From Leidyana gryllorum EB-2025a (Eukaryota > Protista > Apicomplexa): 64,000 nt of DNA. Of this stretch, positions 12,766 to 36,983 are shown one piece after another; position 1 is the first letter of the stretch; each line of letters opens with the position of its first letter. The stretch spans positions 62,001-126,000 of the forward strand of contig JBLWGC010000202.1 of assembly GCA_048772705.1 (NCBI GenBank), read 5' to 3'. A program made the position numbers and the translations under genes. Under the pieces are notes generated by a model. That model had not been told where the DNA came from, ran no database searches, and worked only from the letters and a program-made list of their open reading frames with translations.

Positions 12766-15700
12766 ATGGACGGGGCCACAGATGCGGATCAAAAGGACAT
12801 CAAATGGTTATATCAGAGCCAATCCCATGTCCATCTCGTGATGAATGACGACAGCCTCCAGAGAGCGAAGCTCGGTAGGCTTACCCACCGCCCACGCGAG
12901 CCTGAGTGTCTATATATCGGCATTGAACAGTTATCGCGAAACAGAAAAGGGAACGAACGGGCGTCGGATACAATGTCCCACAGCCACGCCTTCTCAAGGC
13001 TCACAGACACACTGTCCTCGTATGTCTGCCACACACACTTATCTGTTGCGTGGAGTGTGCTGTGCCTGTCTGCCTGTCTGGTCGAACCTAACGCCTTTGA
13101 GCCGAGTTGAGAGGAGATATTGTCAACCGCTGCTTTTCAGGGCGATCATGGGGTGGGCATCCAGCTCTATTTTGAATTTGTTCGAGCAATGGCGCTGGTG
13201 TTTATCGTTCTCGGGCTGATCAAAATCCCGCAGGCCGTCTTTACCCAATCCGGAAACATGTTACGGCTTAACAAAATCTACCGCAGCCTCGTGAGTCTGG
13301 GCTGCCCGACCCCGCCATCATCTCCCAATCTGTCTCAGCTGGGAAATATTGGAGACAAGCCCGACTACAACTTGGTATCTCCGAGTGTGGCAGCTGAACT
13401 AATTCGCGATCGTCCAGTAATTATTGGATCAAATTACATGCCCGTTGCATCTTCAATACTCGCATTCGGAACTCTTGATCTCGTCTGCACTATAGTGAGT
13501 GCCAAACCGAGCCACCGCCCCAAACTGCACAGACTGTTGTGGGCTTCATGATTTGGTTCCTCCGCTACCGCATCCCTCACGTTTGCCGTGAGAATGACCG
13601 CCTTCGACACACCATGGCGGACCACACCATCATGGTCTCCAACCTCCCTCCTCTGCTTACGTAAGCCAAACCACTTATCGACCCCACGACGCACAGCGAG
13701 GTCGAACACCGACGGTATCGCCGCCATCTCAAGAACCACTTCCTCAATATTCTCGAGGATCGTCCACTGGGATTGCGCGAAAAGCGAGAAGCGTGCATCA
13801 AAGAATGCGTTCTCGTTCGTGTTGACGAGTGTGGCATCGACGAGCTGCTCGAAATAGGCAAATTAAAACAAGACGTTACGCTCATACAAGCTCGCTCTCG
13901 CCAAGGTCAACGCGTAAACGCCAGACACATACAGAAGAAGCTTCTCAAGATCGAGGAATGGACTCGCCGCCTTCAGGATAGTCCTGAGGTGCCGAATCGG
14001 GATCGTCCTGTCGCCATGGCCTTCGTGTCCTTCCAGCACAAAGAAGACAAAGAGGTGAGCGTGCTCAAAGCCCACCGAACTCAATAGCTGACTACTCGCG
14101 TCCAACCCCACCCAATCTGCAAGTTCACACACGTGTGTGTCAATGCCTATTGTTGCTACAGTTCCTGATAAATACCTACAAAGGTTCATCTTGGCTGCTG
14201 TTGGAACAGTCACAAGCCCCCTCATTGCGATTTCATGGCCGCCCCATCCGCGTAGAGCAAGCGCCAGAGCCAGAAGACATTCTCTGGGAGAACTTATTGT
14301 ATCCAACTCGAAAGCGTGTGCGCAATGTGGTGATCATCTGGCTGGTAGTGCTCGGTATGTTGACGGCGTAGGCGTCCTGTCAATCCACAACGGGGGTGTG
14401 CAGCGGTGCTGGGTGTCTCGTTCTTTATATCGTCGATTTTGGAGAAGTTGGGTTACGTACCACCACATCGAGCGAAACCTGATGCGGAAGTCTGGCGGTT
14501 GAGACGCTCGATACCATCTGGTTTCAGCTGGCGAATGTGCGATCTTTCGTTCTACAGTGATAATCTGTGCTCAGAGAGGCTTTATCCCGTGGAATTCAGA
14601 GCTCAACAGACTGCAGGGATGAGTTCAATGACTCTCAAAGCCGACAATGAACTGCTACCCTGTGTGGATGATGTTTGGTGAGTGGTTTCCAGGTGTCCGA
14701 GTCGAGATAGAGTGGTAAATTGAAGGGAGTCTGTGGACGGTGTGGCGATGGCGGGGGTCGAAGCGGACTTCCATGTGCCCACAACGGTGGCCTGTGTAGA
14801 GTTTACACAAGCTCTCGTACATAGCGATGGGAGTTTGTTGTTCGAGGAGGCAAGAGGTCATCAGAAGCACCACGGTGCTTTAGAGAGTTGTGATCTGCTG
14901 TTGGACATTGCGGATGGGAGCTCTTTGCCGTTGTGTACTCTGGCCCGTTCAGCCTCTTTGTCTACGAAGAACAGTTGGATGTGAGTTGGACGAAGCGACG
15001 GTGTGATGTCGGTGGGCAGAATGCAGACGTGGAACAGTCGGTCGACTCGGTACTGTCCGGACGTGCAGCCGGGGGAGAACGGATGGCAGTACATTGAGGA
15101 CAACCTGATGAACTCGGGGGACGAGCTTCATAACCGGGATTGGTACCTGTCTTGTTATTGTCTTGACGGTTTCGCATTGGATAAAATCGGCGTTTGCACG
15201 TGAGTTGATCCGAATGGTATATCTTGATGTGTGAGAATCTTCCTCAGCAAATTCTATGCAGAGTATGTTCGGAAGAACTCTGCTCTGTGGGCGAGTGAGT
15301 GGTCAGTAGCGGGTGTTGGAGAGGTTGTTTCGCAGTGCTTCTTTGTATCACATTGATCAACACGGGACTGCAATACCTAATTCAATGGCTGGTCCAACAC
15401 ATGGAGAAGCCGTGGTCCAATAGCCAAAGGATGGCTCTCTCCTGCTCCAAGATCTTCTTGGCTCAATACCTCAATTCGGGCTTCAACATATTGTTGACCA
15501 CTGGTCACATTTTCTCCCGCACCCTGCGAGTCGGAGAAACCGAAATCACAGTGAGTGGCCGTTGAAATTCTCCTTCAACGCAGCCCAGGGCGCATATGGT
15601 GACCTCTCGGGCGGCTGGTACGAAGAGGCCGGACTCCGACTGATGTCTTTTGGATTCTTCCATATAGCCTTCCCCCACATCTTCATGGTGAGCTTCTCCC

Positions 15701-17264
15701 TTAACAACCGAGAGTCCAACGCGACTCTCGTCTCGTCTATTAGTTGTTGATGCCGTTGTGGTGGAAACTTTGGAGATGGATGTTCGCCAAGAGACAAGTG
15801 ATCCAATACGATTTAGATAATCTGTACAAGAAGCCCGAGTTTGCCATTGACTGTAGGGCGGCGAGCGTTTTGGCCTTAGTGTGTTTTATGTTGACCTACA
15901 CGGGCCGTAAGTCTGTCTGTTCAGTATCGATCGACACTGCGCATTGATCCCCAGCGATGCCCTTATTGCCTTTCTGTGGGGCAGCTGCCATGGGAATCAT
16001 ATATTGGTGTGACAAATTCCACTTTCTCTATGGCTCCTTGAAGCCACCCCAATATAGCGAGGGGATCATAACGGTGGCCACTGGGCTCCTCCAAGTGGGG
16101 TTATTGGTGCGCACTATGATTTCCATGTCGGCTTTCGGACATCCTCTCGTAAGCTGCTAACGAAGGATACGCGCAACTGCATCCATCGATGACGACAGGT
16201 GGCGCCTTCCTCTTCTCTCGGACCCGGAAGTCACGACTTCCTCGATATGATTATAGACTCGGCTGAGAAGGAGAATATGCAGTTGACCTACGAATACGTT
16301 CCTCCAAACTCGGCAGCCTTCGATCCCTCCTGGGCCTGGGCGAGGTTCAAAGCTTACACACTTAGTTCCGCCAGTTTCCCCTCGTGAGTCCCCATCGGCT
16401 TTCAGTGACGGCAAAAGGGGCTGCAGGACTCTCTATTTGATCATCGTCACTTTCTTGGCGCTCAACATTGGCATTCTCACTCTGATGTACGCGTTCCGGC
16501 TGGTGAGAAGAGTGGTCGTCGTTTGACTCTCATGAATTCGATGACACAGACGAAGATGCGCAACTTTTTGGAGCGATGGGTCAACAAGGTGACCGAAATA
16601 GTGGAGCCGAGTTCAAAGGAGGGAACCTACGACGAGCTTCAGGAGGTGAGTTGGAGATTGGTGGCGGGAATGACAGATCGCTATGGTCCTGCAGGAGATG
16701 AAGGGTCGAGCGGCGGTGACCAGTTATAGGATGACGGCAAACCCGGCCTACGCGCTGATCAACCGGGCGCGAAGCGAGATGAAACATAGGAGGGATGTTC
16801 CAGGAGACGCGACAGGATTGGCCGCTCATCAGCAACGGAAACTGAATTGGGCTGCAGAGCACACTGTTCTCGAGGGAGATGAGGAGACAGCCGTGCCGAC
16901 AGAATTGCAAGAGAACATCCCTCCTGAGCCCCCAACTGGAACGGTCGTACCCGAGGTGCCCTCAGCTGGGCTTCTGGGCGACGAAGGAGAAGATGAGGAA
17001 GTTGATGTTCCCCGAGAGTGTGATACAGCTCGTTGTGCCGATTTGACAGCCCAAGTGCTGGCGTTGAATCCGCGACTGCAATACATACTGGCGCCAATTC
17101 ACGGCCAAGAGAATCTCTCTCCAGCAACACAAATCCAAATGTCGTCACCTGTGGTTGACGAGGTGTCCCCAACACACACACATAATGTCCCCAGACTATC
17201 TTTCACCCCACCAAACCATTTTCCATCCCCGAACAACTCTGATGATCAGTCGCCACCACTGTAA
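12766..17264 (+). CDS. OSCA/TMEM63 (CSC1-like) mechanosensitive/Ca-permeable channel, many short introns
   Basis: GVGIQLYFEFV, MAFVSFQ, EQAPEPEDILWENL, KIFLAQYLNSG, YWCDKFHFLY..KPPQYS motifs and multiple TM segments. Start could be 12766 or 12841. Confidence 0.85.
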
Positions 17265-17608
17265 ATCTGGTGTGTAATGTGATTTTTAGTGGATACAAGG
17301 GTTGATGACACAAAACAGTAACGATCAAAATGAAAAAGGAGCTCTCACTGATCCCATGAATGATCAAATGAGAGGGGGGATACTAAGTAGCAAAAGAAGT
17401 CAATTGCTTCTTTGCAACACAAACACACACACACACTCCCGCGCGTGCCCACAAAGGCACAGTAGTGTGTGGTCAAAATCCATGGTGGTGTGGTTCGCAC
17501 TCGAGACAGACAGATCCACACCTAATAAGAGGGTCAGTGAGGTGTCGCAGGGGATGGGGACAAATTAGGGCGTCAACTCTTGTTTGTGATCAAGAGGCGC
17601 CAGCAGTT

Positions 17609-18637
17609 TCATACGTCGTCATCATGACCAGCACAGACCTGAATTGAGACTCCTTGGACACAGTGATATTTTGAGACTTCTGGCAGTCCCGGATCACTGG
17701 CAGATGGAATCTCGAGTTTCGCTTGAGTGATTTCCCACTTTTGTGAACCCGTTGTGCTCATGGAAAGCGTATGCGCTTTCTTCAATGACCGAGTCTTCCT
17801 TGCCGCTGGCTGCATTGGCGAAGAACCGACATTGCTCTTTCCACCGCCACTTTTCTGCGGAGACCTCGCCTTCCCTCCATCATCTGCAGTCATCAACCTT
17901 GACGATGACGTCATCTCCTGCGATGAACGCCCTGCTCGCCGTTGGTCGCCATCTTTCCGCTGATCGCCGTCCCGTCGTCGTCCTCGCTGTGCAGCGCCTC
18001 CGGACGGAGAACAGTCGGTCGATGAAGACGTACTCGTGGCTGTTGTGGTCCTCTCTTCTTGGGGCATTCTAGGGAAATGGTGGACAGGGAACAGAGTGCC
18101 CTCAGTGAGCTGTCATAGCACAACGCAATATTGTGTCTCATCTCAGTCCTCATGACTCACCGGTATCACTCGCGATCCGAATGCCACTGCCACAACGCCA
18201 CCCGCCACGAAACCAATTCGCCACCCTGGTGGAATTTCTCCTCGATAGCATGCTTTTGTGTACTCTAAGTGAACAAAACTATACAGCTGATACTGTTCTG
18301 GTGTTGCAGGGGTCCAAAGTCCGTTTCCGAGGTCGAAGGATGTCTGCGGGGCCGCTAAATTGTATGCCGTCATCGGCATTGGCATTGACATTGCCGGCTG
18401 GCTGAAGGAAACTGGGGCGAAACCTGTCGGGGTGGCGGGCACCATGACTTGAGGGACCATATCTGGCATCGCCATTTGAGGTAGCGCACTGAGGTGCGCC
18501 ATGGGTCCTTGAGGACCGGTGACTGAAGGGATAGGTAGCTGAAGTGGAGTAGGGTGGGCAGGAGGGTTCAAAGCCTCCATCGGAACGTGGACATGAGTTT
18601 TTCGACCACTTCCACCTTTCTCCATCGATTTCATCAT
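17609..18637 (-). CDS. Pro/Met/Ser-rich hypothetical protein (exon structure uncertain)
   Basis: ORF 18143-18637 with a GTGAGT donor near 18160 and a CTAG acceptor near 18069; downstream frame ambiguous. Confidence 0.35.
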
Positions 18638-20691
18638 ATGGGTGAAGAAGCTCGCAAACTGAAAAGATCGATTGTGTGATAAAACGTGTGAGATCGATCG
18701 ATATCCACCTTGACACCCACAGAGTATCTATACCAATATAGTGTGTGCTACGTTCAATATGCCCCAATAATTCCACCAAATTCCCTTCCTGACACTCATC
18801 AACCGACCGCACCGATGTTAGGCCACCACTCGGACCAACAGATCACTTTAGTGAGCTATGGGGGCATCACAGCCGTAAAGTAATTACCTTTTCCCTCAAG
18901 TCATAATGCTTGCGTAAAATGGGCACCAGAATTAGTGCGATAATTTATTGGGGGGGCAAGTTGGCTTTCGCAGGGTTGGGGGCAATGTGGTGGATCGCCG
19001 TCATTAGGCGCGAAGTGATGAAAAATCAGAGGTTGCAGAAGGAGGGGGCACAGTTTGTAGAGTGTGGATGGATCATTCCTGTTTGAGACCCCAGGAAGCC
19101 ATCCCGCCCCACGCGGATTTTGTGGAGCACTGGCGAGGGCTGGGATGCTCGACGGTCTATCACCTCTAAAACGGTCTGTGGAGGCAGAGCTGGTGCCTGA
19201 ATGGGACGGGGCAATCATAACAGAGCGTTCGTCTGGGATTTGGGTTTGACACCTGGCGGTGGGCTATCAGAAAGCAACTAGGATTCGCCTTCTTGTCAGT
19301 TAGTGTGAGGGTAACTTGGGGCAATTAGTCACTCTGAGAGCACAAGTGATTTGCCGCTCAGATGTTATTAGGGTCCCTCGAAGCAGCCGTATTTGACTGT
19401 CTGTTCGTTACCTGAATGCTATGTCCGATTGTTTCAAAGAGCCGAGGCTGAATAGTCTAGTGTGCTAATAGTCGGCTGGGATCTCCAGAATCGTGCGAGC
19501 GGCCAAAGCTCCCCCCGCCAAACCCATCCGGCAGTTGTCGCCATGTTTACCGAGGTGTATTAAAAGCGATCTTCTGACTCCGGCCAAAGGCAGCGGCTGC
19601 CAAAGGTAGTGGTAGCTTTGGACGACCAAATCTCAATCGTGTACACCAGATTAGGCGAGACCTCCAGCTGCCTTGAGGTCGCGCTATGATCGGGCAAACC
19701 TTGACAATAAAGGCTTCAATGACCAGCCAGAAAGCCCCGTCACAGGCCGCAGCACCCCGGCACGTCGCCTAATGTTGAGATGTCACAGTTTACAGTCACC
19801 TTGCATCGCTCACCTGTTAAAAGAATTCAAGATTTGCTCAGGCGACTGGACATCTGCGGCCGACTGTGGCGGTCTCAGCGGCCACCTTCCGATTGTGTCG
19901 CGTTCTTGGCTGATATCAATTTTCTACGGCAGAGGTCGGAGACAGTTGTCGTCTTCTTTTCCGTGGCCAAGGCGTCCGCCCCACCCTGGAGCAGTTCTAC
20001 TGCCTCGACCGGTTTCGGACTATTTCATTCCCTCCCTGGAGGGGGAATACACCGTTGATGACGGGGGAATGGGACGTTTCCCGGCGTGGGCAGGCGTTGA
20101 GCTGACCTCTTCAAGCGGGGACGTAGCCTAGCCATACGCACTAGAGACTTCTCAACGTCACGACACTCCCTAAAGGAGCCAGACCTAATCCAGCAGTTGT
20201 CGCCGTGTTCACTGGAGTCTACTTGGCTCCGATCTCTAACGTGAAAGGAGTTACCTCCCATACATGTTATCTGTGCACATCTACCCTTGACACCTTTTTA
20301 TACACTGATTGGAGTTTGCGGGGTCCTGGGAGGGGTTTGGATCGGTGGTGACGCGGTGTTGGATTGGCGTGACCTCCTCAACTTGTTCCGACATGTCTGG
20401 TTGTTTAGAGGATCGCCGTTGTAGGCGTAGGCTCTGCGATCGGGTTAATACAGGTATGATGAATAGAGAAGTTGTACTAGATTAGTTGTAGCTTTGTTTG
20501 ATCTATAGTCACTGATTAGAGTCACGCATCTCTCGCTCTGTCTATCTTTTCTATTCTATCTGTACTTTTGTAGTTGTGTGTGGCATCGTCCCAATGGGCG
20601 ATGCAGCTGGGTTGTGTCTGTGTGTCTATTACAGATCACACGTTAGACTACGGTGTTCTAATACGGATGCAGCTACTTCGGATTTCTGTCT

Positions 20692-20709
20692 ATCCAGCAG
20701 TTGTCGCCA
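20692..20709 (-). promoter_or_regulatory. Primer-binding site complementary to 3' end (incl. CCA) of a tRNA-Ser
   Basis: Plus strand ATCCAGCAGTTGTCGCCA resembles a tRNA-Ser 3' end (yeast tRNA-Ser ends ...UCCUGCAGUUGUCGCCA, from memory). Near-identical copies at 20188-20205 and 19526-19543. Confidence 0.75.
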
Positions 20710-20965
20710 TGTTACTTGTTAGATCTGGGTGAGACAAGGCTAGTGAAAGTGAACTACATTGAGGACCGGAACTGAGGTGCTAAGTGTGATTTCCTTACCG
20801 TGAGGGCACAAAAAGGTAGAACAATAGGAACCTTACAGCCCCCCGTGAGGTGTAACTCGAAAGTAGCAATTCCCTTGGGACACGAGTCCTTATAAGCTGG
20901 TTACTATCGGCACTACCTTAAATCAACCCGACCGGCTCCCCGCAGCTGGTCGGGATAATAAAACA
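20710..20965 (-). repeat. Intact innermost LTR (256 bp)
   Basis: TGTTTTATTA...CAAGTAACA with TG/CA and TGTT/AACA inverted termini, TATA-like CTTATAAGG (~20888-20896), PBS directly adjacent. Confidence 0.7.
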
Positions 20966-21363
20966 CTCCGCAGTCAGGATGGATCTACATGGGACCCGAC
21001 GGGCGCCCCAGAGCGGGTGGGGATAACAAAACACGACGATGACGGCGTTCATTTTCTTTCAGCAGTGTCGGCGGGAGGCCCCAACACCAGGGGTGGGTCT
21101 AAATCGAACCCGACCAGCTCAACCGGGGCTGGTGGGAATAACATAACAATGATAAATAACACAAGAAGAACCCAGGGACAGTGAATATGTTAAATAGCAC
21201 AATTTTTGGAAAGTCAAAGGTAATTTGTAGAGGGCTTGGGACGAGGGTGAGGACTTTGGCTTTGGGGATTCGTTTCAAATAATTTATATGCTTCGTTAAT
21301 TGTAGACTGTTCTTTTGACAACGTCTATCGCATGATCATGCAAACAATCACTGAAATTAATGC

Positions 21364-35573: not shown

Positions 35574-36983
35574 ACTTTCCTTGTGCCGTAGACGCTTCGC
35601 GCGACGCTCCTCTGTTGTCAGCGCAGAATCTTCTCTATTGTGCTTCCAGTGGCGCACCGCTAAAGGCACACTGTCAACAGGGGTACTCCACAGGCTCGGA
35701 ACCATTACAGTCCCCTCCCACCCGAGACGCAGTGCCCGAGCTCCAACGTCTACCCAAACAAATGTGTCGCCCAGCTCTGCGATACTACAGGGCACCGCGG
35801 GTAGGGACTGCTCACGGCGCACCTCCAGTGTCCGCGGCCGACCATCCTTCCCAGCCCCCGCTACCAACACTGATGTGGAACCACAAATAGGAATCAGTAC
35901 ATCTCCGGCTTTGGTAGTAACAACACTCAGAGGAACACCCCCACCGGGTGTCTCCACAGTTGCCAACAGCTTTGCCTCCGGCACTCCAAACAACCTCACA
36001 GTTCTATCTGCCCCCACGGAAACCAATTCCACGTCTCCAAACTTGGCTACGTCAATAATGTATTCGCTATGTCCACACAGAATAGCCTCAACAATCCACA
36101 ACTCCGGATATCGTGAGATGCGAATCTTCTCATCCCGATCACTCGTCGCCACCAAAGGGACCAACTTGCCGTCTCTCTTTCTAGCGTAATGCAATACCTT
36201 CATCTGAGTAATCGAAGCTAAATGTCCGTTCAATGCCGTCTTTAAAGCTTCGTCCTGCTCCTCTGGGCTCTCTCGGTGAACCCATTGACGACCAGCAGTC
36301 CCACCCGCCGTCTCCTCAGCACCAGCCGTCTCCTCAGCACCAGCCGTCTCCTCATCGTCTTTGATTGGGTTGCCCAGGGTGCCGCCGGTGAGGAGGACGG
36401 AGTCGTCCTTCTCCGCTTTGGGGTCTCCATCCGCTGTTTCCTTCTCCATCATCTCTTTGGCTTCGGGTAGGGCCAGGATTCCGGCATGCAGTTTGGCAAA
36501 GGCTTTGTCGGCTGGGTTCCGTTTCATATGAGAGGCGACCATTTTGATGGTGGCGATACTCATCTCTTCCAACTGAGCGAATGTGGCAGTGAAGACATCA
36601 CCGAATTTGTCTGCAATCAGAACTGGCGTCTCGAGCCCCTCGCTGGCTCGATCAGGCAGAGACACAGCTGTCACTCGGCGTTTGAGATGAAAGGTGCGAT
36701 CGTAAACAACCTCCTTGGGACTTTTGATATTGAGAATGTGGAGCTGTTTCTGATCCGTCATAGCCAACCAGTACTTGTCGGAGGCCGCCAAGCTGACGTA
36801 CTTGTCATCTTCTGATTCCCGAACCTCTCTATATATCACCTCATAGGTCTCTGTGTGGAGGATGACCAGTTCTCTCCCCCAAGCAACGGCCAGCTGGGGA
36901 AGGCTATGGTGGGGTACCAGCGGCACCACAGGGTGGTTAGGCTTAGTCAAATCGGAGCCAAAGAGGTCTGCGGGTTCAGGCAT
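35547..36983 (-). CDS. TRM82: tRNA m7G46 methyltransferase non-catalytic WD40 subunit (TRM82/WDR4)
   Basis: LIADKFGDV, GHLASIT, TSDRDEKIRISRYP...LCGHSEYI. Confidence 0.88.
   Translation of the reverse strand: MPEPADLFGSDLTKPNHPVVPLVPHHSLPQLAVAWGRELVILHTETYEVIYREVRESEDDKYVSLAASDKYWLAMTDQKQLHILNIKSPKEVVYDRTFHLKRRVTAVSLPDRASEGLETPVLIADKFGDVFTATFAQLEEMSIATIKMVASHMKRNPADKAFAKLHAGILALPEAKEMMEKETADGDPKAEKDDSVLLTGGTLGNPIKDDEETAGAEETAGAEETAGGTAGRQWVHRESPEEQDEALKTALNGHLASITQMKVLHYARKRDGKLVPLVATSDRDEKIRISRYPELWIVEAILCGHSEYIIDVAKFGDVELVSVGADRTVRLFGVPEAKLLATVETPGGGVPLSVVTTKAGDVLIPICGSTSVLVAGAGKDGRPRTLEVRREQSLPAVPCSIAELGDTFVWVDVGARALRLGWEGTVMVPSLWSTPVDSVPLAVRHWKHNREDSALTTEERRAKRLRHKESSPPPGMSR
36307..36354. 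repeat. 18-bp coding tandem repeat x2.7 (EETAGA) in TRM82
   Basis: GCCGTCTCCTCAGCACCA repeated. Confidence 0.85.

Follow-up and report, generated by a model that had tools for sequence, protein, structure and literature searches.

Ty3/gypsy retrotransposons (Metaviridae) occur in several apicomplexans, including Gregarina niphandrodes, Ascogregarina taiwanensis, Eimeria and Plasmodium gallinaceum. Both of the gregarine genomes studied were reported to contain gypsy-like elements (PMC9141347), and the P. gallinaceum element carries a primer binding site (PBS) for a tRNA-Ser (PMC5880244). We analysed 64 kb (64,000 nucleotides, hereafter the window) from Leidyana gryllorum, a eugregarine near Gregarina; the first-pass annotation had correctly taken this DNA to be apicomplexan. 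With at least 150 reverse transcriptase (RT) and at least 120 integrase matches, counts which like all genome copy numbers given here are lower bounds, this gregarine genome is not transposon-poor. RT matches in it are spaced by 4.65–4.75 kb, which suggests tandem arrays. Through an intact relative at locus C123, the elements of this genome share with the known apicomplexan Ty3/gypsy elements PR-RT-RNaseH-IN, TG...CA LTR ends and a tRNA PBS. They differ in LTR length (253–469 nt in Plasmodium, ~105–125 nt here), in the primer (tRNA-Ser(GCT) in P. gallinaceum, tRNA-Ser(AGA) here) and in a gag start codon that straddles the LTR/PBS junction, and the window holds dead fragments only.

These fragments occupy a gap of ~1.6 kb (19526–21148), and all that can be read lie on the minus strand. 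We consider it likely that the locus is a small transposon graveyard, containing fragments of at least five short-LTR Ty3/gypsy families in minus-strand orientation. Followed along that strand, it begins with three truncated 5′ ends of an LTR designated S-type, continues with the head of a ~113-nt LTR and its tRNA-Ser PBS, and leads, 28 nt on, to a ~125-nt LTR2-type head, in which the PBS and a little of the beginning of gag are retained. A younger solo LTR of 333 bp splits this LTR2-type LTR immediately 5′ of its TATA box. The series ends with a third LTR tail (at most 71 nt) and PBS, beyond some 540 bp of decayed sequence that is not LTR.

The anatomy can be read from three copies of one motif. 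The 22-nt pattern ATCCRGCAGTTGTCGCCRTGTT matches the window exactly three times (plus strand, 19526, 20188 and 20692) against a chance expectation of 0.02, and three matches were reached in 0 of 100 shuffles. In minus-strand reading, AACA directly precedes (T/C)GGCGACAACTGC(T/C)GGAT in every copy, as had been claimed. The tRNA-Ser that the first-pass annotation predicted does exist: tRNA-Ser(AGA) genes at C71 (L019 1431-1512) and C43 (L016) end in ...AATCCAGCAGTTGTCG, and this end plus CCA is the exact 18-nt motif. Since the motif corresponds to the 3′ end of tRNA-Ser(AGA) plus CCA, the three copies are real LTR-end/PBS junctions, and the intact C123 element has the same junction. In 3/3 copies the tRNA-complementary PBS immediately follows the terminal CA of the LTR. 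The match ends at tRNA position 59, one base short of A58, and a PBS that ends one base before A58 has the classical length. PBS 3 (20692–20709, minus strand) pairs with tRNA-Ser(AGA)+CCA at 18/18 positions, and PBS 1 (19526–19543) and PBS 2 (20188–20205), also on the minus strand, at 17/18 each.

At C123 the same CA/TGG junction heads an intact 262-aa gag and a 1119-aa pol (PR-RT-RNaseH-IN); this element is of the Ty3/gypsy type, with a tRNA-complementary PBS and TG...CA LTR ends, and the pol of the related element is only ~30–45% identical to any database protein. In the tRNA-Ser-primed elements gag begins at an ATG formed across the LTR/PBS junction. All three corresponding reading frames in the window are dead: the frame from the junction ATG of PBS 3 stops after 6 codons, PBS 2 begins with C so that its ATG is now ACG, and the frame at PBS 1 spans only 36 codons. 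Neither gag nor pol queries found any similarity in the 64-kb window by tblastn, in line with the earlier view that gag-pol and the 3′ LTRs have been lost. Judged from its sequence, the locus appears to retain no functional transposon. We also considered that the motifs might be the ends of processed tRNA pseudogenes or SINEs. This reading was rejected: only the last 18 tRNA nucleotides are present, they are always fused to an LTR end, and the identical junction heads intact gag-pol at C123.

The three TGTT starts noted previously at 21148, 21033 and 20965 are also real. They head homologous units, each opening with TGTT(A/T)T(G/A)TTAT and containing a GC-rich hairpin, which belong to the S-type family defined by C2:241256, C230:644965 and C208:165225. 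Unit 1 (21034–21148, minus strand) is a 115-nt LTR 5′ end and over its first 64 nt shares 88% identity with the beginning of a 282-bp LTR (C2:241256-241537). Unit 2 (20966–21033, minus strand) consists of a 68-nt LTR 5′ end only. In unit 3 (20894–20965, minus strand) a ~48-nt LTR start is joined to the family's tail motif GGTAGTGCCGATAGTAACCAGC; the unit is an internally deleted solo LTR without PBS. This tail motif occurs once in the window against three starts. A segment of ~70 nt (20823–20893, minus strand) with a polypurine-like G-run follows, for which there is no genome match among the matches listed.

LTR 3 (core 20710–20822, minus strand) spans ~113 nt from TGTTCTACC to GTAACA. It shows homology to the C123 LTR (~105 nt), with a local score of 32 against 15.6 ± 2.2 for shuffles (maximum 25). 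This innermost LTR probably has a length of only ~113 bp, its start position being set by that single significant local alignment. No second DNA-level copy of LTR 3 exists in the genome among the matches listed. Beyond PBS 3, a 28-nt leader remainder (20664–20691, minus strand) separates this head from the start of LTR 2 at 20663.

LTR 2 itself lies in two pieces. Its 5′ part (20639–20663, minus strand) comprises ~25 nt from the beginning of the LTR, where the start is degenerate (TATTAGAAC...TCTAACGTG), and its 3′ part (20206–20305, minus strand) contains the TATA box, R and U5 and ends in ...GTGAACA. Both belong to a family of ~120-bp LTRs with at least seven copies and TGTT...AACA bounds, although the start of the window copy is degenerate; the two halves align to the two ends of this family. 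Five copies are uninterrupted (C202:287384, C33:162977, C169:82980, C43:427452 and C51:231591), and in all five (of the at least seven) the initial 25 nt map to 20663–20639 and not to 21033–20966. The start of LTR 2 is thus only 28 nt past PBS 3 on the minus strand. Downstream of PBS 2 a short leader or gag N-terminal remnant (20158–20187, minus strand) is homologous to the head leaders at C43, C51 and C169 and breaks between about 20145 and 20160. We examined a common truncation of LTR2 heads about 62–65 nt past the PBS. The heads at C51 and C169 fit it; in the window the break comes earlier, at about +30 to +43, and at C43 the sequence continues, so that no general rule emerges. No target duplications were found around the ~205-nt head unit.

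The sequence that separates the halves of LTR 2 is an LTR of 333 bp (20306–20638, minus strand; TGATCTG...CCAATCA), inserted just 5′ of the TATA box. It is 94–95% identical to C104:613707, C85:46577 and C138:14693. Besides the window copy, at least five full-length copies exist, four at 94–95% and that on C140 at 84.6%, and partial pieces occur on C85. Siblings carry perfect 5-bp target duplications (CAGCT, GCGAT), and the window copy is flanked by the imperfect duplication ACGTG/GTGTA. Both flanks are LTR2 sequence, with neither PBS nor internal region adjoining. By these features the piece is a typical solo LTR, younger than the LTR 2 that it splits. The first-pass annotation had missed this LTR. 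In yeast delta and sigma clusters truncated LTRs also lie side by side, and the 333-bp piece resembles the solo-LTR debris of plants and yeast, including the 5-bp target duplications of its siblings. Unlike such debris, the pieces described here keep their PBS as heads, share one orientation and lie in a window without a Pol III gene.

Head 1 is the least complete. The LTR 1 remnant (19544–19614, minus strand) is a U5-side tail of at most 71 nt that ends in ...GGTAAACA and lacks its 5′ part; its final ~35 nt are similar to the end of LTR 2, and it is bounded at 19615, where homology to C35 starts. The fragment 19615–19717 (strand unassigned) is 81% identical to C35:256955-257058, which sits inside a 470-aa ORF, and the window copy has stop codons. 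A second fragment (19986–20157, strand likewise unassigned) is 85% identical to C208:167767-167909. That C208 segment itself adjoins transposon debris. The interval 19615–20157 is non-LTR sequence, and the region 19544–20187, earlier taken as the body of an outer LTR, is mostly of this kind. It contains two fragments, each resembling a single locus (one on C35, the other on C208), and of LTR sequence only the short tail.

These assignments bear directly on the nested arrangement proposed in the first-pass annotation, in which three related elements each inserted 68–115 bp inside the previous 5′ LTR, leaving starts and ends in mirror order (start1-start2-start3-end3-PBS-end2-PBS-end1-PBS). Three TGTT starts and three AACA/PBS ends in one orientation do suggest such an order, and LTR-into-LTR insertion is known in this genome. 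By the intact LTR2 copies, however, the middle LTR begins at the equivalent of 20663 and not at 21033. In uninterrupted LTRs elsewhere 20966–21033 does not run on into 20206–20310, an outcome that the first-pass annotation itself had named as refuting its model. The starts are S-type, a different family with its own tail motif present only once, and they had been paired with C123-type, LTR2-type and LTR2-like-stub ends. Furthermore, 20306–20638 is an unrelated solo LTR, 19615–20157 is of non-LTR character, and the proposed inner elements lack flanking target duplications. We regard this nesting as extremely improbable. A TRIM-like element with paired LTRs was rejected as well: the neighbouring LTRs come from different families, and a repeat search found no direct repeat of LTR length. 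TRIMs and other small non-autonomous LTR elements are alike in their very short LTRs, PBS and little or no coding sequence; the window differs from them in that it has neither paired LTRs nor a polypurine tract with 3′ LTR, and in that its adjacent LTRs belong to different families.

According to the graveyard reading, the pile would have grown as one insertion after another landed in or next to older copies, and element bodies and 3′ LTRs would later have been removed by deletions and by recombination between directly repeated homologous parts. Since no target-site duplications of the heads were recovered, we infer the order and mode of insertion. The LTR 3, LTR 1 and S units are old and diverged, so that weak homology sets several of their boundaries. 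A random pile-up would not predict that the fragments all share one orientation, and similar same-orientation stacks occur at C2, C51, C173, C213, C33 and C85. That at C173 is a younger example, internally deleted and with no detectable LTR pair. Internally deleted copies at C51, C2 and C35 have the PBS joined straight to the pol C-terminus at three different break points.

Partial reverse transcripts, consisting of LTR, PBS and little leader, might alternatively have been captured by recombination or end joining. Plus-strand strong-stop DNA of retroviruses is composed of the LTR and exactly 18 nt of PBS, which matches the LTR and 18-nt PBS seen here, and the PBS-to-pol deletions with their three break points as well as the tandem arrays suggested by the RT spacing point in the same direction. 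Heads 1 and 2, on the other hand, run beyond the 18-nt PBS into leader that is not tRNA complement, and the heads in the window are of different families and too decayed for junction signatures. We consider this origin very unlikely. Extended strong-stop DNA, with the leader explained as read-through into the tRNA, was rejected since the sequence past 18 nt is not tRNA complement.

Some LTR retrotransposons select their sites: Ty3 integrates at Pol III start sites and Tf1 at Pol II promoters. In Dictyostelium, DGLT-A and TRE elements integrate at tRNA genes (PMC5006619). A preference of some of these elements for integrating at or beside the promoter end of LTRs already in place, perhaps where TBP is bound, could likewise have built the present stack. 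This would be a mechanism layered on the debris anatomy and not an alternative anatomy, and we see it as possible, though rather unlikely. At two loci the 333-bp LTR lies within ~15 nt of the TATA box of an LTR2-type LTR. These two entries are independent events, because the two 333-bp copies are 94% alike and the LTR2 tails behind them only 63%. The LTR2 family makes up about 0.85 kb of 15.5 Mb. At C33 an LTR2 start breaks off at the same position, after 25 nt, and a full LTR2 comes next; one 333-bp copy lies 35 nt upstream of a tRNA-Arg gene in a tRNA cluster. Moreover, 10 or 11 of ~18 Ser-PBS sites (12 loci) fall into four same-orientation clusters, whereas by our own arithmetic ~0.03 pairs within 1.1 kb would be expected by chance. 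Against targeting, the informative events number only two or three, three other 333-bp copies have no obvious LTR, TATA or tRNA context, the breaks in the S-type starts lie far from their TATA box, and at C2 the S-type solo LTR has the opposite orientation to the heads that it interrupts. Selection against insertion elsewhere in a compact genome would also concentrate transposons. The likeness to position-specific integrators consists of the one copy near a tRNA gene and the two beside a TATA box, a pattern that resembles targeting close to promoters in a compact genome; no integrase-bearing body is linked to the 333-bp LTR, and the events are too few to establish targeting. The 64-kb window contains no tRNA gene (ARAGORN) and no Rfam match, so a Pol III target does not explain this site. 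The further proposal, that integration directed both to promoters and to kin left the stack as its footprint, with at least the 333-bp-LTR family entering TBP-occupied sites (LTR TATA boxes and about −35 of tRNA genes), seems improbable to us.

The surroundings of the debris bear on a regulatory role. The absence of long ORFs from the gap, as first described, holds, but the long-ORF-free stretch is wider than the debris and extends from about 15.2 kb to 21.36 kb of the window. The sequence at 15.2–19.0 kb is unique in the genome, and the ~3.8 kb next downstream on the minus strand contain no long ORF and no family match. On the other side adjoins a peroxiredoxin gene, identified by Pfam on the neighbouring window ORFs, with the debris directly downstream of it; peroxiredoxin was the only Pfam family found among these ORFs and those at C35 and C208. 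A paralogous peroxiredoxin locus was tried as the empty site and rejected, conservation being limited to the coding sequence. The LTR2 and S-type LTRs have strong TATA boxes, all directed toward the minus-strand downstream sequence, as would suit a stack retained as a putative promoter or regulatory block for a neighbouring gene. Such retention is highly unlikely in our view, since the pieces are unique and decayed, show no sign of conservation and face the ~3.8 kb free of long ORFs and family matches.

LTR-into-LTR insertion does occur at this locus, with the 333-bp LTR in LTR 2, but the locus alone shows neither a self-targeting nested family nor a promoter stack. We read it as ordinary debris left by decayed Ty3/gypsy elements, and the lineage was already known to harbour these. 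For annotation, a group of gypsy families with short LTRs can be recognised by the tRNA-Ser(AGA) PBS, and their LTRs of ~105–125 nt are easily missed by LTR finders; the gag start codon at the LTR/PBS junction and the same-orientation head stacks at several loci are further guides. Should the directed-integration proposal be true, retrotransposons in a compact gregarine genome would pile onto one another's heads, sparing the genes. The two independent entries of the 333-bp LTR beside TATA boxes, together with the tRNA-adjacent copy, provide a concrete and cheaply testable hypothesis about integration sites in a compact apicomplexan genome.

A 22-nt pattern composed of an 18-nt motif plus TGTT matches the plus strand of the window three times (19526, 20188 and 20692), where shuffled sequences give an expectation of 0.02. 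Read on the minus strand, all three copies consist of AACA followed by (T/C)GGCGACAACTGC(T/C)GGAT. The first-pass annotation had placed the motif after AACA at these positions and had predicted a matching tRNA-Ser 3' end, and we could confirm both points. The tRNA-Ser(AGA) genes of this assembly end in ...AATCCAGCAGTTGTCG, which together with the post-transcriptional CCA corresponds exactly to the 18-nt motif. Complementarity stops one base short of tRNA position A58, as is classical for the primer-binding site (PBS) of a retroelement. A search of the assembly (15.5 Mb, 237 contigs, designated C plus number; the window is C202:62001-126000) with the 14-nt core of the motif returned 13 exact and 14 one-mismatch sites, two of which lie within tRNA-Ser(AGA) genes in dense tRNA clusters. 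Such clusters can be very dense, with 14 genes in 3 kb at C71:17357-20370 and six in 1.6 kb at C43:69965-72978.

We refer to the three motif copies as PBS 1, 2 and 3, and to the long terminal repeats (LTRs) ending at them as LTR 1, 2 and 3. Directly before PBS 2, the sequence falls into a family of LTRs of about 120 bp with seven copies, which start with TGTTGAGAGA...TCTAACGTATAAAAAGG, finish with ...GTGAACA, and together account for only about 0.85 kb genome-wide. In the family alignment the first ~25 nt correspond to 20663-20639 and the portion from the TATA box onward to 20305-20206; therefore, LTR 2 starts 28 nt after PBS 3. No alignment was found between 21040-20966 and the 5' end of this family. 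Positions 20306-20638 are a 333-bp LTR on the minus strand (TGATCTG...CCAATCA) with 94-95% identity to copies on C104, C85 and C138, which are flanked by perfect 5-bp target duplications. By this alignment, the solo LTR, which the first-pass annotation had overlooked, splits LTR 2 just upstream of its TATA box. LTR 3, the last ~113 nt before PBS 3 (20822-20710), aligns to the ~105-nt LTR of an element on C123 with a local score of 32 (300 shuffles: 15.6 ± 2.2, maximum 25), and has no further DNA-level copy in the genome.

The supposed body of the outermost LTR proved not to be LTR sequence. Positions 19615-19717 are 81% identical to C35:256955-257058, there within a 470-aa ORF, and 19986-20157 are 85% identical to C208:167767-167909, a locus that adjoins transposon debris; both fragments in the window carry stop codons. 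What is left of LTR 1 is a tail of at most 71 nt (19544-19614), the last ~35 nt of which resemble the end of LTR 2. The edges of the oldest pieces of the stack are approximate. The gap extends well past the retroelement stack: 15200-19000 is ORF-poor, unique in the genome and matched no Pfam family, and is non-coding DNA or else a gene that is diverged, rich in introns or of low complexity.

The three related TGTT starts at 21148, 21033 and 20965 do exist; each unit is about 50-65 nt long and contains a GC-rich hairpin, and the three are homologous to one another. They match the 5' portion of a separate LTR family (S-type), best exemplified by the 282-bp copy C2:241256-241537, with relatives at C230:644965 and C208:165225. 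The first two units are bare 5' ends (115 and 68 nt) and the third is a ~48-nt start joined to an S-type tail motif without a PBS, so that the window holds three starts versus only one tail. A ~45-nt GC-rich palindrome, GTGTCTCCGG...CCGGAGACAC, occurs at C2:241453-241497, C140:224732-224795, C201:66127 and 70820, C26:2549 and 7242, and C43:132095, and is common to S-type LTRs and the paired sites on C201 and C26. These pairs are each 4693 bp apart, which is probably the inter-LTR distance of full-length elements.

The first-pass annotation had proposed a nest of three elements, each inserted inside the previous LTR, and had named as refutation a lack of contiguity between 20966-21033 and 20206-20310 in an uninterrupted LTR elsewhere. 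This contiguity is absent, which refutes the proposed nest. The stack instead comprises three heads in series, each consisting of an LTR tail with its PBS and each from a different family, with a single younger solo LTR nested in the middle head and three orphan starts of another family upstream. Successive insertions into or beside older copies probably built this pile, and later deletions probably removed the element bodies and 3' LTRs. The orphan starts could have arisen by a simple route, in which a related element inserts into a resident LTR in the same orientation, and the distal parts of the two LTRs, now direct repeats, then recombine to leave a start-start-tail arrangement. The same pattern occurs on C33, where a 25-nt start of an LTR 2-type LTR precedes a full LTR of this type. 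No target duplications of the heads were recovered.

Searches with gag and pol (tblastn) found no remnants of either anywhere in the 64-kb window, and the three junction frames are dead (stop after six codons; ACG for ATG; stop after 36 codons). The genome contains at least 150 RVT_1 and at least 120 rve hits. Since the genome searches scored only the best candidates, the copy counts given here are lower bounds. An intact element on C123, whose LTR ends in ...CATCA followed by TGGTGACAACTGCTGGAT, encodes a 262-aa gag, whose ATG spans the junction, taking its A from the LTR end and its TG from the PBS, and an 1119-aa pol with PR, RT, RNase H and integrase in Ty3/gypsy order and only about 30-45% identity to its best protein-database matches. 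Ahead of its 5' LTR lie tandem repeats of ~50 nt and a tract that is polypurine-like. A gag start codon built in this way is found in the Ser-PBS families, on C123, C173, C43, C51 and C2, where the first six codons are the translated PBS (M-A/V-T-T-A-G). In internally deleted copies at C51:~232246, C2:~241203 and C35:~365353, the PBS is followed almost at once by the C-terminal end of pol. Their three break points differ (about pol aa 1009, 1029 and 1080), which suggests that such derivatives form recurrently. RT hits on one strand 4.65-4.75 kb apart (C82:3103/7853, C139:11286/15935, C230:340/4988) suggest tandem arrays sharing LTRs. Some 3.4 kb upstream of the window, C202:56730-58559 holds a member of a young family whose gag-pol ORF is 1544 aa long; seven copies of this family have identical RT scores. 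A pyruvate kinase encoded in the window shares 82-84% identity with Gregarina sp. transcripts and 76% with G. niphandrodes; therefore, the host is a eugregarine. Gypsy-like elements have been reported from both gregarines so far examined (PMC9141347), and the Plasmodium gallinaceum element provides a precedent for a tRNA-Ser PBS (PMC5880244).

A second 333-bp LTR lies inside an LTR 2-type LTR on C85, and both this insertion and that in the window are no more than ~15 nt from the TATA box. Identity between the two 333-bp LTRs is 94% but that between the LTR 2-type tails behind them only 63%; therefore, the insertions were independent. Another transposon graveyard, at C85:~35620-36360, has several LTR 2-type tails in one orientation, a full 333-bp LTR, and an inverted 108-nt piece and an 80-nt start piece of the same LTR. 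A further 333-bp LTR is located 35 nt upstream of tRNA-Arg(ACG) on C138, where 13 tRNA genes are clustered within 3.3 kb (C138:13193-16528), with an identical duplicate at C123:23422-26757. These two loci are identical throughout the 3.3 kb, reflecting either a duplicated segment or assembly redundancy. Neither LTR-TATA nor tRNA context was found at three other copies.

Credible Ser-PBS sites (about 18 in 12 loci) are strongly clustered and co-oriented, with 10 or 11 in four same-orientation clusters on C2, C51, C173 and in the window. By our own arithmetic, about 0.03 pairs within 1.1 kb are expected by chance, and some of the clustered pairs belong to one and the same rearranged element. This clustering and the placements of the 333-bp LTR, which amount to two or three events, fit promoter-proximal targeting, perhaps with TBP-bound sites as the integration target.
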